NCBI GenBank assembly: GCA_964270895.1
Contig: OZ185436.1
Direction: 5' to 3' (one strand)
DNA: 64,000 bases
Source: Podarcis filfolensis
Lineage: Eukaryota
Positions 2,612 to 63,970 of this stretch are shown here, one piece after another. Positions within the stretch are counted from its first letter, which is position 1. Each line of letters begins with the position of its first letter. Both the position numbers and the translations under genes were made by a program. Under the pieces are notes generated by a model. It did no database searches. It had not been told where the DNA came from and was given only the letters and a program-made list of their open reading frames with translations.

Positions 2612-12872
<10,261 letters not shown>

Positions 12873-19961: not shown

Positions 19962-22900
19962 CTGAAAGAAATAAACACAATAAATTAAAAACAATGTCTA
20001 TACTAATATGAGGCATGCTAGTCCAAATGATGCGACGATTTCGGCTCACCTTTGTGCTGCGCTACATCTTGCATATTTAATTTTGATGTTCCAACGGACT
20101 GCAGGAAAGAGAAACTGGACAACAGGATCCACGCCATTGTCTGGGCTGAGAGACCAGTTGTCCTTTTGGTTCCTCTCCTCCCTGAACTGTTTTCATTCAA
20201 GCTGATCATTATTAAGAACTTCGTTAACTTTAAGAAATGGTGTTTGAGTTTGCATGCTCTGCCCTTCCCATCCCCATTTCCTTTTCTGCTGTGTCTTTTA
20301 GACTGTAAGCCTACCTTCCTTTTAATCTGTACACAGCACATAGTAGATTTTAACGGATGAACTCAACATAGCACTAAGCAGGTTGTTTCAAACAGATATA
20401 CTTGTGCTGACAGAGAAATCTGCCCTCTCCTCTGCTGGCATGCTGTTTCAGGTGTTCTCCCAACATCCCCTGCCTATTTGTGGGGTTGTGGGGAGTGCAG
20501 ATGGGGGGAAAGCCTTGCTGTGCTAGCAGAAGTACTTGTAGGGGTTCTGGTGATAGGACTCGTTAGCCGTGTTTTATAAATGATTACTGTTGATGACAGA
20601 TCCAGAGCAATTTAGTTGCAGTTGTCCCATTGAAACCAGTGTGAAAAATCAGTCACAGTTGCTACTGCAATCAACGAGAGTTATCTTCAACAAACAGTTT
20701 GGATCCAACCCAATGTTTTATTCTTGGACCTATGGCCTGTGTTCTTCCATGTGTTCTTGCCAGCCTATGCTCTGTGAGGGTCTTTACATGGAGATTGCTA
20801 AGAGATTAAGAAATTTCTTATGCTATAGCTTGAGTCTTCTAGAAATACAGCAAACCAAAGGGTTGCCACTTTTAATGCTGCAAAAATGGATTTTCAGACT
20901 ATCAGTGCAAACTTATGCATGCTTTCTCAGAAATAAATATTATGGTACACATTGAAACTTACTTACAGGCAGGTGTGCATAGGATTACAGCCTTAGTTTG
21001 CCAGAGAGACGTGAGCTCAAACAGAGTACAACAGGGAGTTAATGCTTGTGGGCAGCTATTGTTCAAGTGAAGACTTTACTTTCTATCCAAATCTATTTGC
21101 ATTAAATAGGAGAAAGTGTGCCTTCTCCAACTATGTTGTTATCAGCATGTGTGAAGGAGAATGAGTGCATAATTTGTGCTATATCCTTGCCACAGAGTGT
21201 GAATATTATTATTATTTTATATTATTCTATGTACACCACTCACTTTTTTAAAAATTGAACTGTTCAAAAAGTTTTCTAAACAGATAAATGAAAAGTTCCC
21301 TCTAGACACCTGGAATGAATTTTGCTTTTTAAAAAAAAAGTCTAAAATGCCTATTCTGACAATGTTGCTTGCTGGCAAAGTACTTTGAACCAGCTAAGGG
21401 TTATCAATATGAATGCAGTTCCCCTCCTGTTGGGACTCCATATATGTTGTCCTATCAGGAAATCAGTGAGAATGCCAATCAGGTGTTCCAGAGGAGGCAA
21501 TGGGGGCTAGAGTTGATTGATTTGACCAGGGCTACATCTGCATAACTGGATTGGGAGCCAGAGCCTTTAAGAGGATTTGTGCTCCAATTCAGTTCAGCTT
21601 GGCTAGAGCAACTGAGAGCACAGGTATTTGAAACATCTATATCAACAAAATTAAGTCCACCATGCCATGCTACAAAAATAAAGCAGACAGTACCACATTG
21701 TAAAATGGGGGGAAAGGCAGTGCTTCCTATTTAATCACCTAGCACTAAAGTGGATCACAGCTGGTTTAAACTGACCAGCGGGCCGGATTAGGCCCCCGAA
21801 ATGGACTTTGGACATGCCTGGGTTATGGTGACTAGTGAATAGCACGGGAATATCTTGACCTTGTATTATTTGCACAGGAAAAGTCCATTCAATCATGATG
21901 AGGAGGACAGGCAGAGATTCCAATTCTAAGAGGGCTTTTTCTTTTTAAGCATCTCTTTTCAGAAGGCGTTCTTTATTTAAAACATAAGGTTTAAAACTAC
22001 AGATATGAAACGTTCACAAGGGATTGGATGCTTATGAAGGCTGCTGTGGGCAACATGTGTACTACAGGATAGTCCCACTGACGTCAAGAAATGTTGGTGT
22101 AAGAACAGTAGTGTCCGTAAATGCAGGTTGGAGGAAGATGATACCGTTATAATTACCCTGAACATAGTATGAAGGCTTGAATAATCATAAATTATAATAA
22201 ATATCTGAAGGAATGGGTCTTGGTTATTAGCTGCCAATATTTTTGAGAAAATGAAAGCCAGCCTGGGTTATTACTCCAGCAGGATAATTGGCTTTAGTAA
22301 AAGGAACCAAATGGATAAAATATCTCAATTCCAGCAGGGCTTTTGATAATGTTCCATATGCTACTCTTACAAGTAAATTGGAGAAGGGTGAATTGGAACA
22401 TGCTGCCATGAGGCAGGTGTACTTTTGGCTGGGAAGCTACACACAAGATGTTCCAGCATGCTGTGGATTTCAGCCAGAGTAGCTATTAGTGGATTGCTAT
22501 TGTTTGAATTGGGGAGCTAAATGACATTCCACAGGGATCTGCCCTGGACCAGCACTAGTGAGCATTTTTATTAACAGCTTGGAAAAAGCAATGATGAGTG
22601 CGCTAAGATTTTACAATCTGAACTGCAAACACAACAGAGGGGAAATCAGCACACTTAACTCAAAGCAAATGTTTATGTGGGGTGGAGCACCCAAAACAAA
22701 AAAACCTAGGAAAAGAGTGAGCGAGCTGGGCATTCGGACTGCAACAGGAGATACTACAGCAGATACTACAGCTGGTAGGCAAGAAGACTAGTCATGTGTG
22801 TGGCTACAACAGCTCGCCATTAGCTAGCATGGAGCTGATGTGCAAATAAGTTATTGTATGGAAGACAGGAAAAACCTAAACTATTCTGACCTGCAAATTC

Positions 22901-23715
22901 TGAAGTTAGCATCTTGTACTGGCCTCAGGGAGAATCCAGGGAGACAACTCAATTCCTTGAATTGTCAAGATTCTAACATGCATGGCACACCAAGCATCAC
23001 ATGGCCATCTGTCAGGGATGCTATAGCTGCATCCAGCACGTTGAGGTTGGACCAGAAACGTCCAAGTTTCCTTCCAACTCTAAACTCTAGGATGCTTTGA
23101 ATCCATGTGGTTTACAGACTGTGTGTGTTGCCCAGTCCTAACCTTTGGGTTATACTAAACTGCAACTGCAAAAGGAATCAGAAGCTGGTATAACCAATGT
23201 CAGAGATACAGAAGCAGTGATGCTGAATAACTTTGGGCCCAATTTCAGCTCTCAGGTATGCAGCTGAAAGCCATTGGCCCAAATCTAGATGTAGCTATGT
23301 GCAAAACCTACTTAAATAAGAACCTCAGAAAGAAAAGTCACACATAGTGGCCTCAGAAGTTGTATCAGGACAGCATTTCCATTACATTACTTGGGGATGG
23401 AAAACCCTTATATTCACCTGAGCAGGGGCAAATGAGAATATATAGATTGTGTGCATTTGGATGTGTATGTTTCTCCAACCCTTTGAATATCTATACCTAC
23501 ATCTGATAACAGGAACTTCCAGTATCAAACTACACAGATGGTAAATCCTCTTGCACATAACATGCAACATGCAGTGAAGGTTTGCACATGGCTTGCTGCC
23601 ATTCTGCACACACAAAGCTCCCTCCTGCATGGACTGAAATTTTAAAAAGACCTGGAGTGGGAACACAGTTGTCCTACTCATTAGCAATGAAATGCAACCA
23701 AAACTTCAACATAGC

Positions 23716-23776
<61 letters not shown>

Positions 23777-26700
23777 CCACTCAGTGCTTTTGACTTTCAG
23801 TCATTTTTATTGGCGTATCCAATTTCCATCATTGCACTGATATTCTAAATTGATATTTAGAATATAACAAAGTCTTATTGACACAGAAATCTGCTCCGGC
23901 ACCAAAATTTGACATTAGCATTAGCACCAAAATGCCAGTGTCAAATATGAACTCCAAAATCTAAACTGATCACTGGGGGAGAAATAAGACCCATCAATTA
24001 ATCTATTACCTGCACGCTTAAGTGGCCTATTCTTGTCCAGGCAGAGTTACACTGCTGAAATGCTACTACCGTACTTCTGATTTGAAAGTCTCAGGAAATA
24101 ATACAGGTATCTTAAGCACCCCAGAAACCACACAATCTCTTAAATGCATAAAACAGGCCTGCAGAACCCAGGCTAAATGCAGTATGTCAGGTGAAAACCC
24201 TGGTCAATCAAAAAGTCTCCAGCCTTTGCTGCTTTCCTCAGGGTTGAAACCCAGGGAAGTTATGAAACAAAAATCAGATATAGCCACTGGACTGCATTCA
24301 GCTTCATGTGTCATTCTACAGGTCTGGCATCAGCAAAAGAAAAAGAATAAAAAAAGAAACAGAGGAACGAGGACAGAATGAGGATCTTACCTTTCTCAAT
24401 ACTGTATTTGGAAGTTTCCTTATTTTCTCCACATGTTCCGGGTTAACCCCCAGCTCACAGCAGCTCACTCTGAGCAATTCTTTGTAAGTCAGTTCTTGCC
24501 GATCCAGTTCAATTTCAATGAAATCGTTCTCTTTTAGAGTACGGTTTTGAACTCGGACCTTAAGCACCAGTTCTAATTTTAAAAGACACACACAACCACA
24601 ATTGTTAGGAGCATTAATAATAAGCACGTGGCAAATGTTATTGGGTAGTAATTAAATTTCAAAAGGTTGCCTTGTTTCCCTTTTGGCAATCCCTTTTTCT
24701 AACTTGTGAACCGCCCTGCAACTTGCGGGTATAGGGCGGTATACAAATTTAGTAAATAAATAATAACAATAACAGCTTCAACGTGATGCTTGCCATGGAG
24801 TAGCAATGAAGCTCCTGGACTAGAGATGGAGAACTTCAGCCCTCCAGACCTCTCTCTGAGCCTCAGAATGCTCCTCAGCCCTGCTTGTCACCTTCCTCAA
24901 GTGTATTTGCCTGGCTGCACGGTCTCCTTCAACTGTGATGCTTCTTGCTTGTCTGCGTAGAGCAAGGTGTGTGTGAGTAGATACTAACCTACTATACAAA
25001 GGTAGCATTTACATTCATTGATCTTCCCACTTCTCCCCAGGCCCTGCCCACCACTGGAATGTGGTCCAGAAGATAATGTAACTATTAAGCTGAAAAAGCT
25101 TCCCCACTCTGTGCTAGACCAAACCTACTATCACATGAAACCCTCGAATTGGGGGGGGGGCAGGGAGAGAGAGAGAGAGGCAGGCAATTGACAAGGTCCT
25201 TGAATATGCAGGTGCAGCCACAAAACACATTTCCGCTGTCATCAAACACGGCCCATGGTGTAACAGCAAATCTGCATCTTTTCACAGTTCAGCTTTGGGT
25301 GGTTGCTCTCATGGGGCCTGCATGATTATCAGGACCTCCATCAGAAAATGTGGACCAAGTCAACTATTGCTTGATGCTTGCAGAGCTGCCTAGCAGCGGC
25401 AGAAAAAAAGCGTGGATATAACCCTCCTCATGGCCATGCTCTCTCTGCCTTTAGCAGAAAGAACCAGCCTTAAGTATTTTTGCACTGTACGTTGCCTCAA
25501 TAAGGTTTTGAAGGCCCAAAACAATGAAATAAATAATATTACTTCGGTAATATGCCTAGATACACATTCAATTTAAGCAACAGCAATTAAGACAAATAAG
25601 CATTATTGTTTGTGGGGAAAGAGGTATCTATGGTATCCCTAATGATACACTATCATTTAGAGCTCAGGAATAACAACTTCAATAAATCAATTTTTCTATA
25701 TCTGCGATAGGCCAAACAAAAACAGTGAATTTATTTGGCGGGGGGATATAGAATCCATTTAGTTTAGTAACATAAGGAGCAATTTCTACTACTAAAATAT
25801 ACAGTGGTACCTCTGGGTGCGAACGGGATCCATTCCGGAGCCCAGTTCGCATCCAGAAGTGAACGCAACCCATGTGCGCGGATCACAATTTGCTGCTTCT
25901 GCGCATGAGCGTCACGTAATTTTGACCGTCTGCACATGCGCGAGCGGCGAAACCTGGAAGTAACGCGCTCCGTTACTTCTGGGTCGCCGCAGCACGCAAC
26001 CCGAAAATACTTATCTTGAAGCTACTTCAACCCGAGGTATGACTGTACTGCCACTTATATAATCAATAGGCAATGGGTACGAGTTCTGTAAATCCACAGC
26101 AGTGACCATCCTCTGCTTGGTGTGAGAGGGAATAATTTAGCACTATTCAACGCTCATATGAATGTGCCTGGGGGCAGTGATCATGATTGGGCTCACCCAA
26201 GCACATTTGATAACATGTCTGGAAATAATTGCCATATGTAGGCTCTTCCCATGTGATTCGAGGACTCTGCCTGTTTGACAGATATATAAATTGTGCAGAC
26301 ACGGCCTAAACGCAGTTTTATCTCCCCATAGATTTTCCAGACATTACATTTAATGCACATAGTGTTTAGTTAGGGCTGCCTTCCCTCTTCTGTACACCTT
26401 CAGACAAATGTCTGATTAGTGCTTATGCGACTGTTTCCCAGGCAGCTAGAAAACGCCCCCAGAAACTTTGGGGGATTTCATTTAGGGATCACTGTCTTGA
26501 CCACTAGGTTGTATGAAGTGTCAGAAAATTTAGGAAGAGACTTCTGACAATGGAAGATTATAAACCCAACCAAACGCTGCGCTAATTGATTTGTTATCCT
26601 GTCCAATTTCTGTTCAATCTACACACAGTTTTTATTCTAATTGTTTTCACCAAAAGGCAGCACTAAGTTATCTTGAAAGCTTAACAGCTGAGGTTACCTT

Positions 26701-29700
26701 GCATGTTACTAAGGGGGAATGTTCCGGTGAAGAAAAAGGGCTGAAATGTTGGGACAGGTCCAGCACAGGAACCATTTGGTGGCTGTGTTTCAGGCTGTTT
26801 AGCTGCAACAGGGGAAGAGAGCGTCCTGTTTGGAGGAAGAGGCATCTGGTGACCGTGACCATTCTGGACTGCAGGCTCTGGGGATTCCACTGCCATTGCC
26901 CTTGTCATGTCCCCATTGGACCCCAGAGGGGAAAGCTTTTCATGCTGCAACATGGTAGTGCCAGGTGCCTGAACTTGAGGTAAAGAAATGGGGCAGTCTT
27001 CATTGTGTTGTTCTAAGGAAGGGGAAAGTCTTCCATTCAAAGAGGAAGCTGAGGTGCTGGTAGTGCTGCTACTCATGGAGTTATACACATAAGGGAAAGG
27101 TGGGTTAGCCAAGTAATTGGGGATAATGGGCAAGGCGGAATCTTTCTTCTCATCCGGAAGCTCCTCAGCATCTTCCACTGCAAAATAAAGAATAGCTCTA
27201 AATAAAGGCAATTTCCAACTAAACATTGGTGAGTAACCTGGCAGGGGAGAGAGAGACAGAACTAGCACTGCTAAGCTAGCTGTACATGTTAAAATTACAA
27301 TGTGCACATAAAAATATATTAAGCATTTCTAACGCTATAATAAAATGCAATCATTTGATACTTCTATTATGCAGTTAGATATTAAATTAAATGTCACAAA
27401 AATTATCCCTGCACATCCCCACCTGGGATTAACGAGGGGCTACATTTTTAACCAAGTCAAAGTTCAGCAATCAATTTTTGATGGTTACAGTCTTCCTTTT
27501 TCCAAATCACTATCTGTACACATCAATGCTGATTCTAGCGAAAGGATTAAAGGAGACTTGGGGGAGAAAGTTACAAGGGCAGGAAGATCATACTGTTTCA
27601 TCTTCATTGAATCACTATGGATTCCCTTCGGCACCAAAATATTCTTGACAGTTATTAGCATCAACCGATCATTTTACCTCCCAGCATCTTCCTAATTTCC
27701 CTCTTTGATGTTAACTGGGCTGGTGTTTCTTCTTTAACAGTCAGAGCGTCTTTATCAGCGCCAGCATGTAGCAAGTACGATACCACTTGAGCATGGTTCC
27801 GTTTGCAGGCCCAATGCAAGCAAGTCCTGCACAAGGCAAATGTAACAGCTAAGTTTGGGGGTTGCAAACACACTACATTAAATAAAAACAAAAACTGATG
27901 TACTGTATTCGTTGAAAAATAATGACAGCCTACCTTAAGCTGAGCAGTTTTGCTAGTCTTACAGATTTTTTATATTTCTTATACATTCCTATAGTGACAC
28001 CTACTGGCAGAATCCTTCCCTATTGTAAATCACAGCGCTTCAAAGTTCATTACAGTACTTCTAGTTTCACAGCTTTCACATGCAGTTCTCTAGCAGCAAG
28101 GCCAAAGAGATGAGCCCACACTCTAAACTTCCAATATCTGGGGCACACTTAAAAACAACAACAACTGAATTAAGATTTGAGGCACATTTCCCCTTCCTGG
28201 CAAAACAAACAAACCAAAACCCATTTTTAGAAAGGATTTCACTGATTTAATGCAATTACCTAATTTACTTAAGTTGACAAGGTATAAATACAAAACATTT
28301 ATTTCCTCCCCCTCCAAACAACATCTCAGTGTAACAGCAAACTACTGTATTGATAAAGGCAGTCTTGCATACACCCAAATCCACAGTCAGGCAATACCTT
28401 CGTAAACAGAATTCTTGTGTTCAAATCTAGTGTATTTGGGATGATTTGGATAAAAAGGCACTGAACTTTTTCCTTTTGTATGTCTGCAAACCGTGGGAGT
28501 TTCCCATAGTCTGCTGCTGTGTGCGGATGGCACCAGGGTGACTACAAAAGGATCCACACACACTAATTGGCTATGCAAATATGAAGAATGGTGATAATTA
28601 AAGCTCCAGTGGGGCAGGGGAGACCTCCTCCTGCAACCCTGTATGGTTTATTACCTTGCCCCTTTCCAAACAACGTCCAGTGAGGTATCTGAAGAAGTGT
28701 GCATGCACACGAAAGCTCATACCAAGAACTAACTTAGTTGGTCTTTAAGGTGCTACTGGAAGGAAAAAAAATTTTTGTTTTGTCAGTGAGGGCAAGTAAT
28801 TCTTCTGCACCTTTGAAGCAACTGAAGCTGGACCATCCAATCAAGACTCAGGGTTTATCTACACGTCCTGCTGCAGGGCAAGGGGAAAACTGAACCCACG
28901 TCTAGAAAACCGCTTGGACCCATGCTTTCTAGGTACAGCACAAGCATAAGTGTGGGCAAGCCTATAGTGATGTTGACCTTTTCAAGCATGGCCCCCCTAC
29001 TATCCTGCAAAACTGCTATTTCTTTGTTTAGTGCATTTGTCTACCTTCTTTCTTCCAAGATGCTCAAAACAGCACACATCAGGTTAACCTATTTTTATCT
29101 TAAGAGCAACCCAATAAAGTAGGTTATGCTGAGTGTAAGACCATCCAGTGAGATGCCTAAGTGAGCAAGGATTTGATTCCAAGTCTCTATAATCTACCGG
29201 TAAATTCAACGCTTTTTCCAGTTCAACAAATAGTGCCCAGTTATGCAGTGCCAAAAAACTATGCAGGCATAATTGAAAAGGACATAGATTTCCATATGAT
29301 AACGTATATGCATTGATGCAGGTTTAGAATAATTACTATAATTTAAAATATATACAATGCATCTCAGTCTAGACGAGAAACTACAATCAAGTGACCCATT
29401 TGTCTGCTGTCCAGTTGTTGATGGAGTAATGTCAAAGCTCTTGCCCTCCTTCATTCAAGTTCATCTTTAAACCAAACTTGGACTTGACAGCCCTTCAAAC
29501 AGAGGAGGACACCTTCAAATAGAATCCTGTCCTCTCTAAAGCAGGACACTTGGTCACCCTAGTTCATTACTACTTATTTTATCTCAGTGTGCTCTCAAGA
29601 TTCTTTTTAAAATATTACTTCTGCTGCAAAAGGTCACAGATCATTGAAATAAAAACCATTTCCATTATAAAGCTATTCTCTTTCAGAACCATATGGTTGA

Positions 29701-30654
29701 TTTTGAGACTACTGCAGTATTAGACTTTGTTAAATGGTCAGCGAAGCCATATAGCTCTAACCAATGTTAAACTTTCTGTATTTTCTAACATATTTAGTAT
29801 ACAATACTGATTTTGCGATTGTCAATAGTTTACTGTACAGTACTGTACTATAATTCTCTGGTATATTAATATTTATAACTACATTAATATTGTTAGAATT
29901 TTTCTCTCCAGTGTGCAGTTATCTATCATTGTATCATTCTGACAAAGTTTTGCTGTATTCTTCTACTCTGAACAAATCTCAAAACAATTTTGTGCCACAT
30001 GCAAATCTCACTAATTCACTCCTTCCCTTTCCAAAACAACTTCATGCCACACCAAAATCACAATACGTTTCCATAAGACCAACCAACAAGAGTAGAAGAA
30101 AAGAAAGCACAGTGGCCATACATTCAATTTATATTACAAAAAAATGATAACTTTTACTTTATGAGAACTGTTAGAAATATAAGAATATAATTGCTAAAAT
30201 GTGAGATTCACCTCACAAAAGCCAACCAAAGAGAAAGGCACTTGTGATCTAACAAGCAGACAACCAGATCTCGTCAGTGTGATGTAGACACTGCTAACAA
30301 GATTAAAATAAACTTTTGAACACTATAAAACGTAACAGCAAATGCATTGTCTGACCCTCCTTTTAGAAATTTTAGAAGGGATGAATAGCAAGAAGAAAAG
30401 ACTTGTAAAATATCACTCCAAACTAAGTAACCAAGTCTACCACACACCGCTCTCTGAAAATGCCAATACGTATGGCATTGCCCAAAAGCTGCCGATGCAA
30501 TTCACTTGCTAAATGCTCACCAGCCGTTGATTTCGTTTTGAGAGTTCACACTGACGCCACATTCCACCAATCGCTGAACTTCTTCAACATCCCCCAAAGC
30601 AGCGGCTTCTCTCAGTCGCTCCTGAAGCTCTTTTTCCTCTGCTGCAGAGCTCAT
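19815..30654 (-). CDS. ANKRD40: ANKRD40 ankyrin repeat domain protein 40, 363 aa: complement(join(19815-19961,24391-24572,26698-27177,27678-27826,30521-30654))
   Basis: Five GT-AG exons, 1092 nt in frame. N-terminus MSSAAEEKELQERLREAAALGDV...NGWTCLHWACKRNH (ankyrin repeats); C-terminus ELVLKVRVQN...ERPCYNKKASKLTY*. Lies between ABCC3 and LUC7L3 as in human. Confidence 0.95.
22200..23095 (+). mobile_element. Decayed CR1 LINE 3' region (RT remnant to 3' tail)
   Basis: Translates to YLNSSRAFDNVPYATLTSKL...WL and ..PQGS.LG-like RT motifs; ends gttggacc...ccttccaactcta. Confidence 0.6.
23722..23774. repeat. (AG)n microsatellite, about 26 units
   Basis: Direct observation. Confidence 0.97.
24391..24572 (-). 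CDS. ANKRD40: ANKRD40 exon 4 (ELVLKVRVQNRTLKENDFIEIEL...VLRK)
   Basis: attag|AACT...AAAG|gtaaga, 182 nt. Confidence 0.95.
25802..26045. mobile_element. Tc1/mariner MITE (second family) with TA TSD
   Basis: TA|CAGTGGTACCTC ... GAGGTATGACTG|TA; CpG-rich interior. Confidence 0.75.
26698..27177 (-). CDS. ANKRD40: ANKRD40 exon 3 (Pro/Ser-rich linker, VEDAEEL...FTGTFPLSNMQ)
   Basis: tgcag|TGG...CAAG|gtaacc, 480 nt, open. Confidence 0.92.
27678..27826 (-). CDS. ANKRD40: ANKRD40 exon 2 (TCLHWACKRNHAQVV...RKMLG)
   Basis: tgcag|GACT...GGAG|gtaaaa, 149 nt. Confidence 0.95.
28684..28723 (+). ncRNA. Minimal type-I hammerhead ribozyme motif
   Basis: GGTAT / CTGAAGA / A / GTGTGCATGCACAC / GAAA / GC / TC / ATACC: stem I, catalytic core, stem II, GAAA, minimal palindromic helix III, UC cleavage site. 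Confidence 0.6.
28686..28783 (+). mobile_element. Penelope-like terminal-repeat fragment (single copy) with 8-bp flanking direct repeat CAGTGAGG
   Basis: Near-identical to the right arm of the 7659 element; CAGTGAGG at 28678-28685 and 28784-28791. Confidence 0.7.
30521..30654 (-). CDS. ANKRD40: ANKRD40 exon 1 (MSSAAEEKELQERLREAAALG...EINGW)
   Basis: ATG at 30654; donor CTG|gtgagc; 134 nt. Confidence 0.93.
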
Positions 30655-37947: not shown

Positions 37948-40900
37948 TCACAAAATAATCTCATTAAGATGACTAAAAATCTTAGATTTGCATAAGTTCA
38001 GAGCCATTAATGTGAATTTTCCAGAAAATTTTGCTTTAGAAAGTTTTCCAAAAGAAATTCATATGCTGTTTAGGGTAATTTGCCTTGGAACATTTTCTGG
38101 TGCTCTAGAGAGTGATGTAATTGGTATCTTTATTTTATTTGAAATTAGTAAATAGAGCAAAAGAAAACTGCAAAGCTTACCTAATGTTCTCTACATTCAT
38201 TGCAGTTGGGATCTGTTCATTGTTTCTAATGAGCTTATAAAACAGAAAATTTTCAAAAGAAAAATGAAGCACTGGGGAGGAGGGGAACATTTTCAGTTAC
38301 TAGAAAATGTTCTGCCTCACATTCCTATTCATAGCAGATTGGGTTACATTCTAGGGCCCCCATGTGCATAAGCGAAAATCGTGTAAGTGGGGAGCCCCCT
38401 CTAAAAAGCCTATAAAAACTTGTTTTTTCCTGCTCTCCAGTTCTAGCCACACAACTCTCTTCAACTAGAGTCAAAGCTCGGGGGCTAGCTGAAGGATGCA
38501 TGGAAAAGCAGTAGCAGCTCCTTAAGAGCTCTGAGGACTCTAGCTCTCCTGCCATTTCCCAGTTTGAATCTACAGTATCTGTCTATTTTCTGGTGGCACC
38601 TGTATACACAGCTGTGTGTGAGTCAATTGTGCTTAAGTGGACGGACGCCTGTATATGGCTTCTGTCAAAGAATCAAAATGCAAACTTCCAGGTTCTTGCA
38701 AAAACCCTTTAGCAATAGTTTCCCAATCTTTCCATCATTTATGGCCTTACTCCATAGCTAACTATATACTGTCAGCTTTAGTGCTGTCATGCTCTAGTTC
38801 ACATTTCAGATCCAACGGCAGTGTTCCTAAGACTTCCACTAGCGTTCTGATTTTTAATGTGGATCATACCAAAATTGTACCAGGACAATATCACAGATAT
38901 TCATGGGTGTGTATTTTAAAGATGTGCCACCAACAAGGTTTGGAATTGTTGTAGCATTCTAAATTGATAGGTAAGATCTCTTCAGTACATTCTTTTTCTG
39001 GAACTCTTTGCCTCGACAGTCGTGGGCTTCTGTATTCCAGAGGTTCATAACCACTCTTTATTAGCTCAGTAAATGTTGCAGGGGTGTGATGCGCTTGTTC
39101 TTCTGCTGTCACTGATTCCATTCAAACTTTGAAAAAACAAATATGTAGCCAAGTACACTTGAATCTTCATAGAAATATATTGCTTCACTTTCCTTAGGCT
39201 TGCAAATCTGTACCCTACCTCACCCCATTTTGTCTCTGAGCAAATGACGCTTGATTTTAAACCTTAGCCCTGCTCTGGTGTGTCGGTGGAATATTGATCA
39301 GGTTACAGTCATTCTGGTACTATGCCAGCCTAATGGCAATATGCTAGAAAGTCATTTAGAACTGTTAGTACTGTTGTGGAAAGGCACCCCAGTTTTAATC
39401 TTTACATTAGTTTGGTTAAAAACTGTTGAACTTTATCCAGGTCTTTGTTGGCATAGTGTTATCAGAAAGTCATTTGGATGTATCATCATTATTGCTTTTA
39501 TTTCTAGGTCCTTGTGAGAAAATTCATGATGAAAACCTCAGAAAACAGTGAGTGTGTTAGTAGTTATAATTAATAAGAAGCTAATAAATATAATTAAGCA
39601 ATAACGCAAGCATTTAAATGAGGTTTTAAAAAATCCTCAGTTAAAATTTCACGAGGTGGATAGCGTATAGTCTTTCGTTGTTAGGTAATATGGAGATGAC
39701 CTTTATCTGAAGTTTAATGTAATCATTTCTTTTTTAACATTGTCAGGTATGAGAAGAGTTCTCGATTCATGAAAGTAGGCTATGAAAGAGACTTCCTTCG
39801 GTATTTACAGAGCTTGCTTGCAGAGGTGGAACGCCGAATTCGAAGAGGTCATGCACGTTTAGCATTGTCTCAGACTCAACAGGCTTCAGGTGTAAGTACA
39901 AAAGCAGAGGGCACGTTAAACATATATGGTCTTTTGGGTGATATCCTTTTGCAGAACTGTTTACAGAACATATTTTCCTCTCTCCCTTGCACTTCTGTAA
40001 TGTGCCCCAAATCTACTCTAGTGTGGGAGCCTGCAGAGGGGAGGGGAAGAGGAGCAGTCTCATTGCACATGCGGATGCCCATTTATGTGATGTTGGATAC
40101 CACCCTTTGTATTTTCTTATAAGTGTTCTTTAAAGTAGAATAGATATACATACTTGACCAGGAGTTTGAATTACCGGTCTTAACTGTGTTTCTCAATGTA
40201 TATACGGTTCACTTACTGCTTTATAAGTTCCTTAAAACTGAACAAACACAAGAATAGCAGGATACAACATAAGCCACACTTGGATGAAACAAATATATGT
40301 GCAGTTTGAAGCTAACTTTTGAACTCGTCAGAATCGAGTTTCTAAATATGTACTGTTGCTCTGGTGGTTAAGAGATAACTGAGTGGTAGGTGGAAGCCAC
40401 AGTGTGGAGGGTGAAAGCTTAGCTTTCAGAATTTCCAGAAAGGGACCCTGCAAGTGCAGAACCCATATTTGGGACTGCACAGAGACCATGTACAACAGAG
40501 GTGGACAACCTCCAGTCCATGGATGAGACTTAGCCTTTCAGGCCTTCCCCATTGGCCTTGCAGACTTTTGGGGCAAGCCATGTCTACCTGCCCTACATCT
40601 GATGTCATCCTATTAACTGTGGGGCTTGCCCATAGCTGCCTTGTGCACCTCCCCAAATCTCTGACAACCAGCTGGTTTTCAGGAGCCTTCAAAGCACTGC
40701 ACAATGCTAAGTAGGATCACACTCTTCACATCAGCTGCTGCAAAGGGGGAGCAATCCTTCTGAGTTCAGACTCAATAGGAATCTCTGGTGCACCCATTTC
40801 CAACACTAAGTGGGATTCCCCTTACTGCTGGCCCTGCCCTTTTAACCTTTTCGGAGCAAACTTTAATGGCAGGGAGGGGCTTCAGAGAGCAGTTTGGCAA

Positions 40901-53417: not shown

Positions 53418-55019
53418 TGCAAGTTTTCATTCTTGAACTTTGAAACACAAGGATAAATGTTTAGTATTTTGTGTGACTCCAACTAAAATAAACCCCATTT
53501 TTACAACAAAGCTATACCTGGCTTCTTGATATACCCTAATGGAAATACAGTATCTATGACTTTCTGTTACACATTTGATTGTCATTGAGTGTTTAATATT
53601 AAATAGACTTCTTTCCAAATAAATCAAATGTGTTCAAGTTCATTCTTGTCTATCCACATGCCCCCACCCCAGATCAAAATGAGAGGTTGGGGTATTTCTC
53701 TTATCAAAATTTACATAACCAATTACTGTCCCAGTAGTTTCCATAGCTTTTTAAAAAGTGTAAATAAAGATAAAGAGGTAACACTGCAATTTTCATGTGA
53801 TTGTGTTCTTTCTTGGATATGCGCTAAGATACATAGTTAAGTATAAAAATATTTGTTGTTGCCAAAGTCAAAGTCAAACCTGCATAATATTTGAGAGAAG
53901 TGAAGTATCAAGTTAGACGCGAGAATAGGAACAGACGACCATATAATCCGATACTCCACTCATTTTATGTACCGTAACCCGCCATTTGTATACAGGAAAG
54001 CATGTAGAACGCATTGTCAGCCATAGGAACCAGACAAAAGGAAACTAATAACCTTGTCGCGGTATTTCTCTATGTAATCCAGTCAGCGCAAAGTAACTAA
54101 GGGCCTACATCAACTGTTAGAAGACATGTTGGCAAATGCACACAGCTTCATGACAAGTGAATTATGAGGTGGTGCCTAAAGCAAAATTTTAATTAACAGC
54201 CACTTTAAAACTCTTGGCTACCCTGTTACAAGTTGATTGTGCAAAAAATAAAGCTGCCATTGAAAATTGTTCTTAGGTTCACAGGATAAAGCATCACATA
54301 AATACATCGTTTTCTGTTGGTTTGGTTTGCATTACATGCCTTTTTATATAAAACTACAAAAATAGTTTTCTAAATGCATAGATTTGCTTAGTTACCAGCA
54401 TTGCTATATCATCTTTCAAACTAACGTTACTATGCAACAAGCAATATTCTAGAACAAAAACTGGTAACAGGAAGCACTTGTTTAAACCTGTTTCTCCATT
54501 GTTTATCTTCTCAAAACAATTCCGTTTTTACAGCATTATATTATAAAGAACATAGGACAAGAAAACAGAACTTTTACTTGTTCCTCAGTTCATTTGTCTG
54601 TCTTACTGTTACACAGAGAAGGTACCTAGCAGTACTTTTTATATATTAAAAAAAAGGACCAGAGACTACGACAACACTAGTTTTTCTGTGGCAATGTTGG
54701 CCTGACAACAATGTATAAAATATATTAACTCAATACATATCATTAGGTGCCAGACACCAGTTGACTGAGGGAACAATTGTGATTAGTTTCCCCCACAAAA
54801 CAGTTTTCCACTTGTGCTTGTTCATTGTATAGGCTACATATGAGACTGTTGAAGTGCTTGAGCAATCCAAGAGCCATCTTTGAGATAGCACCACTGAAGA
54901 AATATTAACCAAAGTTAAGAAAAATGCTGCATATAAAAATATTGAATAGTAAACACATCTTGCTTTAATTTTAACGAGAATAAGGTTTTTAGATACCAAC
55001 TTCCTAGACGTCTTAAACT

Positions 55020-55163
55020 TCAGTATGTCAACTTTGCCGCTTTAGTGTTATAGCAGGGTCTTTCCATTAGTGTTGCTGAAGCATTTCTGAAAGGAGAACT
55101 GATGCTTTTCACCAAAACCAGCTCTAGCTCTTGAAAATCCTGAAGCCTAGCAACATCTTTATC
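55020..55163 (-). CDS. ANKRD40CL: ANKRD40 paralogue exon 5 (DKDVARLQDFQELEL...AKLTY*)
   Basis: tcaag|GAT...TAC TGA, 144 nt. Confidence 0.93.
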   Translation of the reverse strand, partial: DKDVARLQDFQELELVLVKSISSPFRNASATLMERPCYNTKAAKLTY

Positions 55164-58100
55164 CTTGAATGAAAGACACAAATGTCATTAACTGATGAGT
55201 TGCAGTAACTTTATAAAATCAGTTTAACAAAGCAGGATGATAGATAACCAGATTGAGAGAACCAGATCAAATACATGTAAAGAACTACTTTTAAGTGTCT
55301 CCATTATGAAATAATATTCCTTGCACCAAGTTGTTGAGTAGGAAGTCATTCCAACAAATCTACATTTATAATGCTAACTCGCTTCATTCACAGAACGGCA
55401 TTAGTATGGTGGGTTGCTAGAGTAATAGCCACAGCATGACCACTTAGTCATTACCATATGTGGGAAGATATACCAGCTTTTATCTGATATAAACAATCTT
55501 TGCTTGGATCTAGCATTTTTCTGAATGTGCTTGAGGAAGGTGGAGGGAGCCAAATCTTGCTGGTTCCTCTACAGCCCACTGTAAACTGTCTTATCAATCT
55601 GTGTAGCTCAGTTGGTTAGAGCATGGTGCTGATAACACCCTATGGGACAGCTGTGTATTCCTGCATTGCAGGAGGTTGGACTAGATGATCCTTGGGGTAC
55701 CTTCCAACTATGATTCTATGGAAGGTTGGAAACTCCAACAAGCAGTGTAAAGGGCAAAGCAGGATAGGGATCAGAAACTGGAAACCAGCAAACAGCACTA
55801 CTTCAGCAGGAGTAGTGTTACATAAAAGAGACATTCTGGATACAACCCCTTGTAAATCTAAAAATGTTTGGCTGTATCCAACAAAGTTGTCCCATTGGCA
55901 CGGGGATTCTACTTGCACAATGAAACTACCCCTCTCTTCCCCCATGCACCCCAAAATCTGCTCTGCGGGTTCCCCTAACCCTCCAGAGCAGATTTTCAGG
56001 AGCATGGTGAGAAAAGAGGAAGTTCTGTTGCACAAAAGGCGGAGTAAAAGCCTCTGCAGGGTCAACTACACCAGCACTGAGAATGTGCTGGCAAAGCAGC
56101 ACCCAGCAGGACTGAAGACAGCATCTTCTTAGAACCCTAATTAAACATTGGGGCTGGCTCCATAATCTAGGGCCTGGTTCTGGATCAGGTCAGCCCCAGA
56201 ACAACCTGCGGCTGATCTAGTGCCAGATCAGATGAGGGGGAGGTGTGCACAGCCCTAATTAAAAAGAAGCACCCATTATTCTTCAAGTAGTCCCCTAAAA
56301 CTCCACATCGGGGTACTCAGCCACTGGATAAATGACTGAATATGCTAAGTGCTTTGACCATTTAAAAGACATGCTGCAAGTATTATACTTTATCTTGTTT
56401 ATGCTAGATTTTATGTGCAACACATTATCTGTACAACCAAGAAACAAAGATTCTCCCACCTCCTCTTTTAAGTGGTACATACAGTCCAGCAAGAAACTGC
56501 ATTAAGGTTCTGTAAATTGCATATGTTATTAGAGCCAAACTCTGCATTCTGTTCACTGCTTGAGAGCAGGCTGGCTCTGCATGTTAAAAATTCTGAAGGC
56601 TCCCATACCCAAAGGCAGAGTGACTTGGAGAGAGGTTCAGCTACACCCACAGGATTGCCGGCCGGAGCCACCGGCTGCCTTTCTCCATCAGTTGCTTATC
56701 TCTGCTTAGAAGCTACTTTGCCCTAAGGCCGAAGAACTAGGAAGGAGAAGAGGCAAATTTAGTCACTAAGGGTCGAAGAACACCTATGCTAGAGACTGCC
56801 TGCTGCCTAAAATTACCAGAAGAAACTAGCAGATAGTTGCCTGTACAAAGCATTATCTCAGGCTACTTTTAAAATTGACCATGTTCTGTTTTGGACACAG
56901 ATTTATTCTAACATCACTGGTAAGAGTGTCAACATAGGAATACTTGAAGGAAAATGATGGTCCTTACCTTTCTTATCAGTGTATTCGGTAGCTTTCTAAC
57001 CTTTTCCACTTGTTCAGGATTAATGCCCAATTCATGGCAACTCACTCTGAGCAAATCTTGGTAAGTCAGTTCTTGTCTGTCCAGTTCAATTTCAATGAAG
57101 TCATTCTCTTTAGGGTTCTGAACTCTTACTTTAAGTACCAGTTCTATATGTGGAGAGGAAAGAGTATTTTGAAGTTAAATCATCGCCAAAATGCAGAGAA
57201 ACGGAAATGACAGCCACAAACCCAAATATATACCCTTGGAAATATACCCTACAAATGTTAACAGATGTTTACTAGACCACAGCCTTTATCATTTGTATTT
57301 GCTCTTTGTTTGCACAGACTCAAGAGAATCCAGTGTAAGTCAGTAGCAGCAAACTCCCAGTGTAAAGCAGTGGGGCTCTGTCATGAACTCTGCTGTGTTG
57401 TGTGGCCACAGATTCTCAGATACATGCATAAGTAATGACTGAATAATAAAGTTGAGGAGTTTAAGGTTGAGAAGAGAACAAACAGGAAGAACAACAAGCT
57501 ATGGCAATGTTGCTACAGGCAACTGTAGCAAAAAAGTCTACCAGTATGCACACACATGCACTGCAGACAAACAGCCCCGGTCCAATAAAATTACTCAAGG
57601 AGATCAGTAAGTGTAGAGTACAATGAAGAAGCAAGTGGAGTGGAGGGCTGTGACAGCTGTATAAAGCTATTAAGGGACTAAAGATGGAAAAGTGATTCAC
57701 AGGCTACTGCCACAAAGAGATGAGCTCTTCAGCTGTCCACCTTGTCTTCTTACCCATCTCATTCTCTTGCTTAGTAGTGGCTGCTGGGTCTTCACACTGA
57801 TATTTCCAGCATCTGATTAGTGCCAAGTGTACTTTAAACAAAATATCTGCATCTGCAGATTTAATGAAACCCTAAAGTTAATGATTCTCTACACTTAAGC
57901 AATTAAATGTGAAAGCTGATCAGCTTTTTCATGCATAGAGGATAAGCGTGATTTAGTTTTATGGTTGAAGCTAAGTAGGTGGAAGACGGCCTAGGCTCCA
58001 CATATAAGTTGCTCTGGGCTCAGAAGAAGAGCAGGGCACAAATGAAACATCATAAATAATGCCTCAATCCTAATTTTATATGTGCTAGAGTTAACCATCA

Positions 58101-61100
58101 AAAGCAGATTAACGTACTGCTTTGAAATGTTACATTCCAACAATTAAGCCAGTGCAAGTCTCATTCTTGACACCTGCACACCAATCTGAAGTCTGGGCAC
58201 ATGTTTTTCAGTAGCAGTTGTGTAGTTTGGAAGAGCTGCCCATTTCCTTCATTGCAATGTCACCGTTTCCTTCAACCCATTGCACTCCAACCAACAATTC
58301 TGCTATTATTCCAGGAAGATTTCCAAATAACTGAGATACAACAACTACTTCCTCAAAAGTTCATTTCCCTCGTGAACACTGATCTGTGACAACCTATGAT
58401 CATATTACACAGAAGCACGACGACACAATACTGATCCCGGTCATGTGGCAATTAAGAGAAAATGCCCTATCTTGACAAAGCTCTACCAACTCTTTAAGGA
58501 AAGAAAAAGAAGAAAAGGTTCTTAAAGCAGATATGAAGCACTAAAGGTAGTTACTGTCTACTGGAGACACATGCACTGTCTCCAGCTATGCAGTAAAAGC
58601 ATTACAATGGAAAAATACTCTTCAGTACCTTGCATATTATATGAAAAAGTTCCTGTGAGAAGCAGCGGCTGTAAGGGTGGTGCAGTGCCCATACAGCAGC
58701 CATTTGCTTGCTGAGGTACATGTTGTCTAGGTACAGTTGAGGTCAAGAGAGCTCTGTTGTGAGATGTAGATGAGGGATAAACAGGGCAGCTCTGGACTCG
58801 AGGCATTGTGCATTCTGATACTCCTGAACTGATGGGAGAAGGAAGCTCCCCTTCGTGCAGGTCTTCAGAAAGTTCAGTTTCAGCGTGCAAGAAAATGGGT
58901 GTGCAAGTATTTTCAAGCTGAGTGGCTGATAAACAAGGGCTAGGTTCACTCTCAGATAAATAAGAGACGGCAGTGCTGTTGTCCTCAGGTGGTGCTAAGA
59001 GATGAGGGGCATTGTCCTTTTCTTGATAGTCAACACAAGGGAATGACGGGTTTGTCAGAGAGTCTCCAGCATTTGACAGCTTTAAGTCATTCACTTCTTG
59101 ATTGTCACATTCTTCCACTTCAAGGGGGGCGAGGTGGGAAGGAAAAATAGAATCTTTTAATAATTTAATCCATTTTAAATAATGGCAAGCAGAATTCTAA
59201 TGCCACCCAGAACATCTGCCAAACACATATATTTAAAATCATAAACGGCTAGTTTTTAGCTAAAAGAAAGCAAACTTATTTCAGAGTAGAATTAAGTATG
59301 GCAAAAAAAATATAGAATCAATCCAGAGAGTTGGATTAGCAAATCTTTGGTTCATGGAAGAAACATTCTGCAGAAATTTTATTTACTTATTGGAATTGGT
59401 AAGTGAAAAGATGTGTACACATACATACAGACCAAAGCTGCATTGCTGAAGAAACACTCTTTAATCTGTAACCCAGCTTTAATTTGATGTTCTGGGAGGC
59501 TATACTTTTCTGGAGTGTATTGGAGAAGGAACATTTTTAGGTTCCCAGTGTACTCTGCTTGACCATCTGTCCAAATTCCTAGAAGCCACCATGACCAAAG
59601 GAATGGAATCTAAGTATTACAGAATCTGACTGGCACAACAGCTCTCTCATTTAATTGAACAGCTTGTGCAAAACAATTTATTTTAAAATTATTCTGATCC
59701 TATGTACAGTTACTCAGAAAGAAGTCCAAAAAAGGACAAGGGGATTACTCCAAACTCCTATATCAGCCAGCTCCCCAATTACAGTCAGGTCAGTAAACTC
59801 TGGTCATAATTCTACCTTTGTTTTAGATGAGGCAAGCAGTAAGGAGCAAAGCTTTCACTGCCATAGCTCTCAGGCTTTGGGATGCCCTGCCTAAGGTACA
59901 GAGCAAGTCTTTGTTGTTGCTGGGATTTCCCAGAGGATGAAAAACTTGTTTTGTTCCCTGACTTTTAGCTGATGTGACTAGTTCTGTTTTACATTTAAAG
60001 CTGTTTTAATTTCTGTGACATTAAAATTGTTGTTAACATCTTTAAGCCTCATAGGAAAACGGCCTATAAAAGCTTAAAACAAATAAAATTAAAACTGCAG
60101 CCTCAGTTTCTCTAGCCCACAAACAGTCTCACACAATATTCTGCCTGTAACTATAGCAGCGGTTCTCACACTGTGTTCCAAGGAAGTCTTGTCTTCTTTG
60201 GGAGCTTATCAGGGGCTGATGAAAAGATCAGAGATGGCAGATAACTTGTCTGAAAAATGCAGTGCATCTAATACATTACATTAGTTCATAGTCTATTTTT
60301 GGAAAGACAAATTCAGTATGTCGAGTATACCTCCCAGAAGCTTTCTGATTTCTTTCTTTGAAGTCAAATGTGCTGCCAGCTCTCCATTAACTGTGAAAAT
60401 CTCCTTATCAGCTCGAGAATCCAGCAGGTAAGAAACCACTTGGGTATGATTCCGCTTGCAAGCCCAGTGCAAACATGTCCTGTAAAAGTTAAACATATTT
60501 GTTAGCAAGCATCTGTAAAGTTCTTATTCTGAAAGTCACTGTTTTGTGTCATTAAATGTCTGCAAGATGTGTACAGCCATCAGAGCTGTTAAAAAAAATG
60601 CTCAAATTTGTCAGAGATGAAACAATTACACCTTGTCTATTGATCCAGACAAAGTTAGTTGTACTTATTTTCCACTGACCTCAATATAATTCAAGTCATG
60701 ACCAATTTCTTCCATTGATTACAATGGGACCTAAGTTCAACTAAAACTTAGTCTGAATCCAATCTAATGTTACTACTATGCACGAATGAAAGTTTTGTGA
60801 CCAGGCTGAGGTTTATTTTCTGTTGTAAATCAACAGGCCAAATTTGACTGTGCTGTCAAAGCTTGCTTATTGAGCTAGCATTCAACACTATAAGCTGGAG
60901 AGGGAAAGAATAATGTTTAAGCTAAATGACAGTTAATGTTTAAGCTAACTGATGCTCATAAAGGTACAGTTGTCCTTGATGCACATACATGCTTCTTTTG
61001 TTTCATTGGTTTCATTTGCACATCACAGGAAAAGCAACCAGAAGGGTTTGCACCCATGGCACTCGCTCAAAATTCCGAGGCCCAAAAGTATTGTCTGTTT

Positions 61101-63970
61101 TCAGTATCAAATTCAACCCCAGTATCTCTCAAACTGGGTCATTTTTGTCAATTTTGCATGAAGCAGGCACAAGAGTATTGCAGCCAAGAAGATGGCTACA
61201 TGCCTAAAGGCAGTAGCAGCCAGTGGAGTGGATGGCATTGTGCAGGTGCAGCAGTAGAGCCAAGGCAACCCTCCCAACACTTTGCCCCTCCATTCTTGGT
61301 TACTGGTAGTGATCACCATGTTGGGAAGCCAGGAGAGGAACACACCCCACACTCCCTTTGCCCCTATCGGGCTCTGCTAAATATCACACACATGTTCGCT
61401 CCCTTATTAGCCATATGTACTATACGCTACCATCTCATGCCTGAGTGTTACTGCAGCAGTACAATCTCCAGTCCTGAGCTGAACATTGGGAGGGAGGGGG
61501 CAGGAAGACTGCTGCCTGCCAACTTGACAATGATCTTACTAAACTTTTATAAAGCAAATGAATTATACAGCACCAATTAACTGCATCGGAAGGGCATTTT
61601 CTAAGCCATATTCACAATTCTAATATTGCAGTGACGGTCATAATTATAAGACTAATATGTTGCCAGACCACAAGCCCTGAATATGAGCGCACTGAAGGAC
61701 CCAAGTTGCAATTTTAATAAAAGACACACTCATGGCAACAGTATAGGATTCAGAGAGCAAAACAAAGGCATGCAAACGACTTCAATGACCAAATTACTGT
61801 AAAAAGCTACTGCCTTCAATCACACAGCTTGAAAAATCTGAAACCCCACACTTTTGAGTCTCCTCTGCTTGCACTCACACAATCATATAGAGGTAATCAT
61901 GAAGACACACGTCACATAAATCCTGGTGCTCACTGGATGTGATTTAATAGGAGAGGAACTGTAGCTCAGGGGTAAATGGTATACTTTGCATGCAGAAAGT
62001 CTCAAGTTCATAGGAACAGAAGAGCCCTGCTGAATCAGACCAAAAGCCCACCTGGTCCGACATCCTGTTCCCAGACTGGCCAGACAGAAACCTATGAGAA
62101 GCCCACAAGCAGCACATGAGCATAACAGCACTTTTCCCATTTGTGTTCCCCAGCAATGGCGTTCATACTGCCTTCAGTACTGGAGACAGTACAGAGCCAT
62201 CATGACTAGTACCTGATAGCTTTATCCTCCATGAATTTGTCTAACCCCCTTTTGAAGTCATCTGAGTTGGCAATCATCACTACATCCTGCGGCAGCAAAT
62301 TCTACTATGTTTAACTATGTACTATGTCTGTTCTGTTCAATTCTTTGCTTAGGCAGAGGTGTCTAAGACTCTATTCCAACTGGCAGCGGCTCTCTAGACA
62401 ATATTGGACTAGATCCAATGGTAGCTCTTTGTATATTGTTGGGCTGTAACTCTCATCAATCCCAGCCAGCAGGGCCAAAAAGCAGGGACAGCAGGAGCTG
62501 TAGTCCAACAACATCTGGAGAACCACAGATTAGACATACTGGGGCTGTATAGCCCAGTGCTTTGCCTCTTGCGTAAAGCTGCTTCATGTGCAAGGTTTTC
62601 TGAGAACATCTGTCATGTGTTCAGATTTGGGGAGTTTTCATGGGAACAATACAGGCACGCTCCCTACAAGGGCGTCCACAGACTCATTCCTATACAACAG
62701 GGGTTCCCATTTGCTCAAAGCCTGTAAGAATTCTCCCATACAAGAATTTGCATTAGAAAATAATAGAAGCTGTGCTTGATCCTTTGGGGAGAACACGGGA
62801 TTTTGTCATCTGCTTTCTGTTCTCTGTGACCTGAATAACACAATGGCTAAGAGCCAAACTGCACAACTACATGTTATGCAGGGGATTTTCGACTAATAAT
62901 TCAAGTGCGTGTGTGTCTGGATCAGAACAGTGGCACTGGGCAAGAGTTTTACTTGAACCTCTCCCCTCACACCAATTCCCCAAGCTAATAAACCCCTTGT
63001 CCTTTAGGGGACTAGCACTGCTGCTCTGATCAAATTAACTCCTCCCTCTCAGTCACAATGGCTCATCCTAGAAGTGAAAATCAATGTGCTGGAAGATTCA
63101 TCACAGTTCTCCTGAGTAAACTGAAGGCTGGCTCTCAGAGTGAGAGCTCGGGAGTCTCCAAATCTCAACCCCAACAACGTTTATCTCATTTTGAGCAGCA
63201 CTTAGTCATAGGTTCCCTATAAATAATAAATATTATTAAATGTCTGCAATTATGGGAAAACAGTGATCCTGACCTGCCTTGTAGGGTTAAAGCCGCTTGA
63301 ACAGGAACACACACACACCTGGATGTTATTAGGAAAGGTTTGTGACTGATGGCTGGCAAATGTGTGATTTGTTCATATTGGCTCTATTTTTCCAGGAGTC
63401 TCTAGAACCAAAGCCTGAAAGGAATTTCTGTTTAGAATTTCATAACCAGGCAGCCCACTAATCAGGATGAAGCACTGACATCTGACCCATCTATTCTTGT
63501 CAGATGCTGGTGAGATTTTGCCCACCCCCACCCCCGTGGGGAGCGTTTCTGTAACTTGCCTTTAAGATGAACTCCCAGTAAACACGCATTTCAGAGCCAG
63601 AGGGAGGGGGGCCACGGGAACACACGGGGGGGGGAAGATGCTCTTGGACACGGACACAGAGGGTACACATTCGCTGAAGTTGCATTTGCGTGTAACGTGT
63701 TGCTGGCGGTTGCCTCACCATATATAGCCTCGAGAGGGGTGGAAGGAAGTGTATTAGCGACGATGAATGCTGCCCTAATGCTAACCACGGGAATGAGGAG
63801 CACAGCGCGGAGGGGCTGGGGGAGGAAGAAGGAGAGGCGTCTTACCAGCCATTGATCTCATTCTGGGCATTCACCTCCACCCCCTTGTCGAGCAGCGTCT
63901 GCACCTCCTCTAGGTCGCCTAGTGCAGCAGCTTCCCTGAGCCTCTCCTCTAGCTCCAGGTGGCTGCTCAT
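55020..63970 (-). CDS. ANKRD40CL: Full-length ANKRD40 paralogue at the ANKRD40CL position, 360 aa: complement(join(55020-55163,56968-57143,58629-59117,60331-60479,63846-63970))
   Basis: Five GT-AG exons, 1083 nt, no frameshift or internal stop; same intron phases (2,1,1,0) as ANKRD40; ankyrin exons intact. The symbol comes from synteny (downstream of LUC7L3, minus strand) and the shorter QNPKENDF motif. Confidence 0.88.
55599..55720 (+). mobile_element. tRNA-head SINE with CR1-like tail (B box deleted)
   Basis: GTAGCTCAGTTGGTTAGAGCATGG head; tail GGACTAGATGATCC...ATGATTCTATG. Confidence 0.65.
56968..57143 (-). CDS. ANKRD40CL: ANKRD40 paralogue exon 4 (ELVLKVRVQNPKENDF...LIRK)
   Basis: tatag|AACT...AAAG|gtaagg, 176 nt. 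Confidence 0.93.
58629..59117 (-). CDS. ANKRD40CL: ANKRD40 paralogue exon 3 (VEECDNQ...LTGTFSYNMQ)
   Basis: tgaag|TGG...CAAG|gtactg, 489 nt, open. Confidence 0.85.
60331..60479 (-). CDS. ANKRD40CL: ANKRD40 paralogue exon 2 (TCLHWACKRNHTQVV...RKLLG)
   Basis: tacag|GACA...GGAG|gtatac, 149 nt (same length as ANKRD40 exon 2). Confidence 0.92.
61950..62420. mobile_element. SINE (+; 61950-62008 and about 62335-62420) interrupted by a CR1 LINE 3' fragment (-; about 62009-62327)
   Basis: SINE head GTAGCTCAG...TTTGCATGCAGAAAG breaks at GTTCA and resumes at a second GTTCA; the insert reads as a CR1 3' end on the minus strand. Confidence 0.55.
63846..63970 (-). CDS. ANKRD40CL: ANKRD40 paralogue exon 1 (MSSHLELEERLREAAALGDL...EINGW)
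   Basis: ATG at 63970; donor CTG|gtaaga; 125 nt. The 30 nt upstream to the window edge are also open, so a longer N-terminus is not excluded. Confidence 0.88.

Follow-up and report, generated by a model that had tools for sequence, protein, structure and literature searches.

Two ANKRD40-type genes on either side of LUC7L3

A stretch of 64,000 nucleotides (nt) from the lizard Podarcis filfolensis (contig OZ185436.1 of assembly GCA_964270895.1; hereafter the window) contains two genes of the ANKRD40 family. Both lie on the minus strand and flank the plus-strand gene LUC7L3, an arrangement that had been pointed out in an earlier note on this DNA and is seen directly in the window. The gene distal to LUC7L3 (ANKRD40-like, 55020-63970) is referred to here as copy B, and ANKRD40 in the same window as copy A. 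Copy B is an ordinary sauropsid paralogue, already annotated as "ankyrin repeat domain-containing protein 40-like" (40-like below), and its probable link to the mammalian gene ANKRD40CL is the main subject of this analysis.

The exon borders of copy B were read from the sequence itself and then checked by script. Exon 1 (63846..63970, minus strand as all others; 125 nt coding, with the ATG at 63970) encodes the first ankyrin repeat (Pfam Ank_4, E 8.5e-5), and its 5' untranslated region (UTR) extends past the end of the window. Exon 2 (60331..60479, 149 nt) encodes the second repeat (Pfam Ank, E 5.4e-7), while exon 3 (58629..59117, 489 nt) contributes a fast-evolving linker that is predicted to be disordered and has no Pfam match. 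Exon 4 (56968..57143, 176 nt) carries the initial two thirds of a predicted ubiquitin-like (UBL) domain, together with a two-codon deletion. Exon 5 (54702..55163) combines the last 144 nt of the coding sequence (CDS, 55020-55163, including the TGA at 55020-55022) with the 3'UTR, in which a transcript contig reaches at least to 54702 and then continues for 127 nt more; the motif ATTAAA occurs at 54969 and 54193. Every internal exon is preceded by AG and followed by GT, and the joined CDS of 1083 nt translates into 360 amino acids (aa) with zero internal stops. The earlier note had listed exon lengths of 125/149/489/176/144 and an intact gene free of disabling mutations; all its numbers proved correct, the frame is open throughout, and the introns have GT..AG borders without exception.

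Copy A (19815..30654, minus strand) was located by a local tblastn search of the copy B product against the window. Its five exons (30521-30654, 27678-27826, 26698-27177, 24391-24572 and 19815-19961; 134/149/480/182/147 nt) encode 363 aa, of which 359/363 are identical to Podarcis raffonei ANKRD40. The intron phases calculated from cumulative exon lengths are 2/1/1/0 in both copies, as had been proposed, and the two-codon gap reported for exon 4 is evident when QNP--KENDF of copy B is set against QNRTLKENDF of ANKRD40. LUC7L3, which separates the copies, was recognized by an exon for the LUC7 N-terminus (open reading frame (ORF) 39769..40122, plus strand; Pfam PF03194, E 9e-7).

Copy B shows the defining features of the ANKRD40 family, namely N-terminal ankyrin repeats, a PF27687 domain and five exons phased 2/1/1/0. 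The local Pfam copy predates PF27687; accordingly, the single-exon scan matched only Ank on exons 1-2, with no match for exons 3-5. The domain is precomputed on the public orthologue P0272, which is 99% identical to the copy B product (Pfam Ank_4, E 8e-14), and on every match of a word search with the exon-4 frame. Whole-protein searches and modelling used P0272; the joined translation of copy B was used for alignments and trees.

The exon-4 search reached only proteins of 45-141 aa, which fell into three groups: mammalian proteins of 104-142 aa named "putative ANKRD40 C-terminal-like protein"; incomplete bird proteins of 105-107 aa with the long loop QNPNLRENDF, ending SGYNKKASELTY; and bird partial proteins, mostly of 106 aa (104-109 aa), with the short loop QNLRDNDF, ending RPCYNSRASKLTY. 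Because of this length limit, full-length kin were sought with a profile of the C-terminal domain in the whole representative library, which returned 563 cluster representatives, many of them 240-400 aa long with ankyrin repeats and some from invertebrates. Models named 40-like, which combine Ank with PF27687 in 350-365 aa, are present in many squamates, tuatara, turtles and birds (>100 sauropsid clusters; e.g., Podarcis raffonei, Zootoca, Rhineura, Chelonoidis, Dromaius and Sphenodon). The five-exon model of copy B already exists as the RefSeq model of the sister species Podarcis raffonei, "ANKRD40-like isoform X1", whose 360 aa are identical to the copy B product at 356/360 positions.

Transcripts and protein of copy B

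Fourteen public runs, presumed to be RNA, contain 11-15% of the sampled words of 55000-60500, which is approximately the exonic share. Four runs were aligned on 54700-60560: the contig runs X1, X4 and X6 and the raw-read run X23. Run X1 yielded one contig of 1697 nt (depth 39.6) that spans 54702-55162, 56967-57143, 58629-59117 and 60331-60480, and its 30 loose letters past 60480 match plus strand 63847-63876, the end of exon 1. Since this loose end equals the end of exon 1, a single transcript carries all four junctions of copy B. Every contig joint reads CT..AC on the plus strand, i.e., GT..AG on the gene strand. Three junctions recur in run X4, which derives from another organism (~4% diverged; 20 differences over the 489 nt of exon 3), and one in run X6: the joints 55162/56967 and 57143/58629 were found in X1 and X4, and 59117/60331 in X1, X4 and X6. 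Intron depth is ~0 except at a repeat at 55484-55875. The earlier note had named in advance, as an outcome that would speak against it, that exons 1-3 are never spliced to exons 4-5; they are joined in one X1 contig, and contigs from the presumed RNA runs support each of the four junctions.

Several further observations were made in these alignments. The Zootoca vivipara 40-like model P0276 (369 aa) is longer by nine residues where exons 1 and 2 meet (…NGCLLTNRFNFYRTC…), and the window counterpart upstream of exon 2 (60480-60508) is likewise open in frame (LLTNMFNFYR, ORF 60293-60508). Unlike this extended model, the transcript contigs use the acceptor at 60479/60480. The repeat at 55484-55875, in intron 4, has a summed depth of up to ~8,650 in all three contig runs, and the raw RNA reads of X23, 180 in total, all fall on it. 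The loose ends beside it vary between reads, some containing a tRNA-like GGTTCGATCCCC stretch, and an A>G difference at 55673 occurs in almost every record. It looks like a short interspersed nuclear element (SINE) transcribed from many genomic copies. In X6, a single contig of low depth (depth 4, side 28) has a joint from 58544 to 59825 that skips 1280 bases, with GT..AG ends on the plus strand; a spliced antisense transcript over exon 3 could give such a joint, but the signal is too faint for interpretation.

The protein of copy B comprises ~2.5 N-terminal ankyrin repeats, a linker of ~160 residues and the C-terminal PF27687 domain, followed by a conserved tail ending -LTY. The structure of P0272 was predicted from an alignment of 62 sequences. 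In this model, the ankyrin module occupies residues 1-92, with a predicted local distance difference test (pLDDT) of 97-98 for residues 11-90; residues 93-250 are predicted to be disordered, the exon 3 linker staying at pLDDT <55; and residues 255-330 form a ββαββαβ domain with pLDDT 84-97. A Foldseek search with the whole-protein model was dominated by designed ankyrin proteins, and for this reason the C-terminal domain was modelled alone. DSSP assigned it the elements E2-8, E17-21, H28-39, E46-51, E55-57, H60-64 and E70-76.

Compared with UBL domains, the isolated domain model gave Z 9-10 and a root-mean-square deviation of ~2.0 Å across 70-74 residues. Structural matches included the ISG15 C-domain, the UBLs of TBCE, Dsk2, Ddi2 and BAG, as well as PB1, DCX and CIDE-N. 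In Foldseek, SUMO2, ISG15, NEDD8 and ubiquitin were matched at E 5e-4 to 1e-3, with TM scores of ~0.72 by target. By sequence, the domain profile found no relative among solved structures, the only matches being spurious ones to repeat proteins (TALE, PPR) in which no stretch qualified. These models place the C-terminal domain of copy B in the ubiquitin-like β-grasp fold. The chain ends ...RPCYNTKAAKLTY, ~25-30 residues past the last strand, with no di-glycine; because a C-terminal di-glycine is absent, the domain is predicted to be an integral UBL, not a conjugatable modifier. From its domains, the protein could act as an adaptor that would hold a partner through its ankyrin module and a UBL receptor through its UBL.

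Conservation differs among the three parts. Against the 40-like proteins of tuatara, turtle and emu, copy B is best conserved in the C-terminal domain, with 83-85% identity, followed by the ankyrin part with 68-77% and lastly the linker with 36-41%; in all three parts, ANKRD40 is somewhat better conserved. The X4 differences in exon 3 comprise 8 synonymous and 12 non-synonymous changes. Two linker motifs, LPIxPNYLANPPFPY and FQPxFFTGxFPxNxQ, look like candidate docking motifs. They are kept in ANKRD40 from fish to mammals and in the 40-like proteins of birds, turtles and tuatara; both are strongly eroded in squamate 40-like proteins and much altered in copy B.

Age of the duplication and the probable link to mammalian ANKRD40CL

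A full-length tree was built from 49 rows and 355 columns, with indel columns excluded. It contains two starred amniote clades. One is the sauropsid 40-like clade (100/100*), which includes copy B as sister to the Rhineura copy and follows the species-tree order, with tuatara plus squamates (98/85*) and turtles plus birds. The other is the amniote ANKRD40 clade (96/92*), which includes copy A together with echidna, opossum, placentals, alligator, birds, turtles, tuatara and squamates. Frogs (100/100*) are the first group to branch outside both clades, and the tetrapod node that joins them to the two amniote clades has a support of 93/91; coelacanth plus ray-finned fishes come next, followed by sharks and cyclostomes. 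A second full-length tree with slightly different sampling agrees. A tree of the C-terminal domain (107 columns) admits the short mammalian proteins, although its deep nodes remain open. It groups the mammalian ANKRD40CL proteins (100/97*, starred) with the marsupial Dromiciops at the base, and again separates a starred squamate clade with copy B from a starred amniote ANKRD40 clade with copy A. The 40-like proteins of sauropsids and ANKRD40CL of mammals are jointly called CL below.

These trees bear on whether copy B is a lineage-specific duplicate of lizard or squamate ANKRD40, unrelated to mammalian ANKRD40CL. Such an origin would account for a linker exon that is highly diverged from all others (26% identity to copy A) and for the long stem branch of squamate CL (0.23-0.26). 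Nevertheless, copy A is joined first by squamate ANKRD40, next by that of sauropsids and finally by that of amniotes, with copy B left out; orthologues of copy B occur in tuatara, turtles and birds, and their order is that of the species tree. Forcing sauropsid CL together with sauropsid ANKRD40 costs 12.0 units of log-likelihood (lnL), with a p of 0.022 in the approximately unbiased (AU) test. Grouping with lizard ANKRD40 had been named beforehand as the other result that would tell against an ancient duplication; instead, the two copies fall into separate starred clades. The trees and the AU test thus refute a lizard-specific duplicate, which retains practically no credibility.

The duplication is old, because frogs, coelacanth, ray-finned fishes, sharks and cyclostomes branch outside both clades. 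It probably took place on the amniote stem, after the frog split and before the amniote radiation. If it instead pre-dated amniotes or tetrapods, reaching back to a sarcopterygian or tetrapod ancestor, frogs and fishes would have lost the second copy. Room for this is left by the node that sets CL and amniote ANKRD40 apart from frogs, which has a support of only 84/49, and the short loop of CL is the same as the invertebrate form. Against such an age, all 25 frog clusters are of one ANKRD40 type; no second type was found in them or in coelacanth, paddlefish, teleosts, sharks and cyclostomes, and CL is nested inside tetrapods in both full-length trees. We therefore regard an older duplication as unlikely. 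The earlier claim of an ancient duplication with both full genes kept is borne out by the trees and the shared deletion described below, except that their retention is not particular to this reptile; it is general in sauropsids.

The comparison with mammals relied on annotated proteins, the human sequence being left out. In the loop between the first two strands, the segment from R to DF has seven residues in every sauropsid and mammalian CL. It has nine in ANKRD40 of amniotes, coelacanth, paddlefish, teleosts, shark, ray and hagfish, eight or nine in frogs, twelve in lamprey, and seven in most of the invertebrate homologues listed. The short form QN-P/L-K/R-E/D-N-DF is common to 25 sauropsid and 10 mammalian CL proteins and absent from other vertebrate ANKRD40. 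Given the trees and the long form in ANKRD40 from frog to lamprey, the short loop of CL is a secondary, derived deletion of two codons. The motif QNPKENDF, which the earlier note had named for human ANKRD40CL, is indeed present in primate ANKRD40CL proteins among the matches of the exon-4 search. The tail provides a second, weaker character in a length-variable stretch: amniote ANKRD40 (mammals including echidna and opossum, and sauropsids) is one residue longer there and carries an FL motif, and neither feature is seen in the two CL groups.

In annotated therian ANKRD40CL proteins, which measure 120 aa in Dromiciops and 104-142 aa in eutherians, the start lies within the first strand of the UBL domain or shortly ahead of it. 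Copy B, with its 360 aa, ankyrin repeats and linker, falls outside the mammalian "C-terminal domain only" definition, which is a difference of architecture, not of descent. The annotated protein lengths are consistent with a loss of 5' exons in the mammalian line. No relic of the ankyrin repeats or linker was detected at protein level in 11 mammalian CL N-termini (13-40 aa), whose scores against a hidden Markov model of the ancestral N-terminal part stayed within those of 200 shuffles each. By position, copy B lies beyond LUC7L3 from ANKRD40 and in the same orientation within the window, WFIKKN2 being outside it; this is the place which we take mammalian ANKRD40CL to occupy.

Sauropsid 40-like genes and mammalian ANKRD40CL are probably one-to-one orthologues. 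The alternative is that two independent duplications, one giving sauropsid 40-like and the other mammalian CL, both placed a copy beyond LUC7L3, and that the same pair of codons was then deleted in each. It would agree with the 58/0 support for all CL as one clade in the best C-terminal tree, on 107 columns, and with the long, fast mammalian CL branch (stem 0.25), which, like several mammalian tips, exceeds the branches of bird and turtle CL. Yet it needs the identical deletion twice and the identical insertion site twice, sits poorly with a tail residue and FL motif that amniote ANKRD40 has and neither CL group shows, and requires grouping mammalian CL with mammalian ANKRD40, which costs 12.0 lnL (p-AU 0.046). 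On balance, we find independent duplications quite unlikely. The tree support is weak, and the case for a single CL clade draws mainly on the shared deletion, the position and the marginal rejection of this alternative.

Taken together, we put at roughly 80% the probability that copy B is functional and transcribed, the lacertid member of the sauropsid ANKRD40-like gene, an amniote-stem duplicate and the probable counterpart of ANKRD40CL. A local duplication of ANKRD40 would have placed the copies on either side of LUC7L3; both would have stayed full-length in sauropsids, and mammalian CL would have lost the ankyrin and linker exons. Several points weigh against this interpretation. The 84/49 join of 40-like and amniote ANKRD40 comes from a sample without salamander, caecilian and lungfish; a single CL clade reaches only 58/0; and the AU rejection of a mammal-specific CL origin is marginal. 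The ratio of non-synonymous to synonymous rates in the linker exon, ~0.45, is a crude value from only 20 changes. The RNA nature of the runs bearing spliced contigs is a guess, and the raw-read RNA run X23, of which 12% was read, gave 0 exon reads. The mammalian and human position of ANKRD40CL beyond LUC7L3 is presumed, and among the ANKRD40 papers listed, titles and abstract openings address no function of the gene.

Flanking features and comparison with known genes

Two other features of the window lie apart from the ANKRD40 copies. An ORF at 5785-6081 (plus strand) resembles part of an ABC-transporter nucleotide-binding domain, with no Pfam match at E 0.01; it would suit ABCC3, which in mammals lies upstream of ANKRD40. 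Close to the 3' end of LUC7L3, positions 51906-52195 are 290 N, an assembly gap or masked sequence.

The ANKRD40CL locus is treated in the literature mostly as the long non-coding RNA LINC00483, in cancer studies. It was lately re-annotated as coding, with a product that resembles the ANKRD40 C-terminus and is described there as having no known function (PMC7795790). In the parts of the ANKRD40CL and ANKRD40 literature consulted, chiefly titles and abstract openings, no paper addressing the origin of CL was found. The shared indel and a conserved UBL domain with an intact sauropsid gene support a coding, UBL-only reading of the mammalian locus. What is added here is evidence for a full-length counterpart, the identification of the retained part as a predicted ubiquitin-like domain, and an approximate date for the duplication. 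We tentatively raise the idea, with more doubt than confidence, that mammalian ANKRD40CL derives by domain loss from an ankyrin-linker-UBL adaptor still complete in sauropsids; it would be a free-standing UBL microprotein conserved since the amniote ancestor and, having no ankyrin module, could compete with ANKRD40 at a shared UBL-binding partner or act as its decoy there. If so, the sauropsid gene would be a natural full-length control for the role of the human microprotein. Copy B itself is routine annotation and its value lies in the mammalian link; overall, this is a modest evolutionary insight on an already annotated gene.

Among known genes, the closest is the 40-like gene of Podarcis raffonei, which is the same gene as copy B: it agrees in length, in its Ank plus PF27687 make-up and in clade, and its four amino-acid differences are all in the linker. 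ANKRD40, represented by copy A, shares with copy B the five exons, the phases 2/1/1/0, the orientation and the three-part architecture; identity is 80% for the C-terminal domain, 74% for the ankyrin part and only 26% for the linker. Copy B differs from it by a first ubiquitin-like loop that is two codons shorter, a tail that is one residue shorter, and longer branches. The UBL domains of larger proteins are alike in predicted fold, at a sequence identity of 8-21%. Mammalian ANKRD40CL (formerly LINC00483) has the short loop of copy B, as QNPKENDF or QSPKENDF, and the conserved tail ...RPCYNSxAAKMTY; unlike copy B, the annotated mammalian protein is without ankyrin repeats and without a linker.

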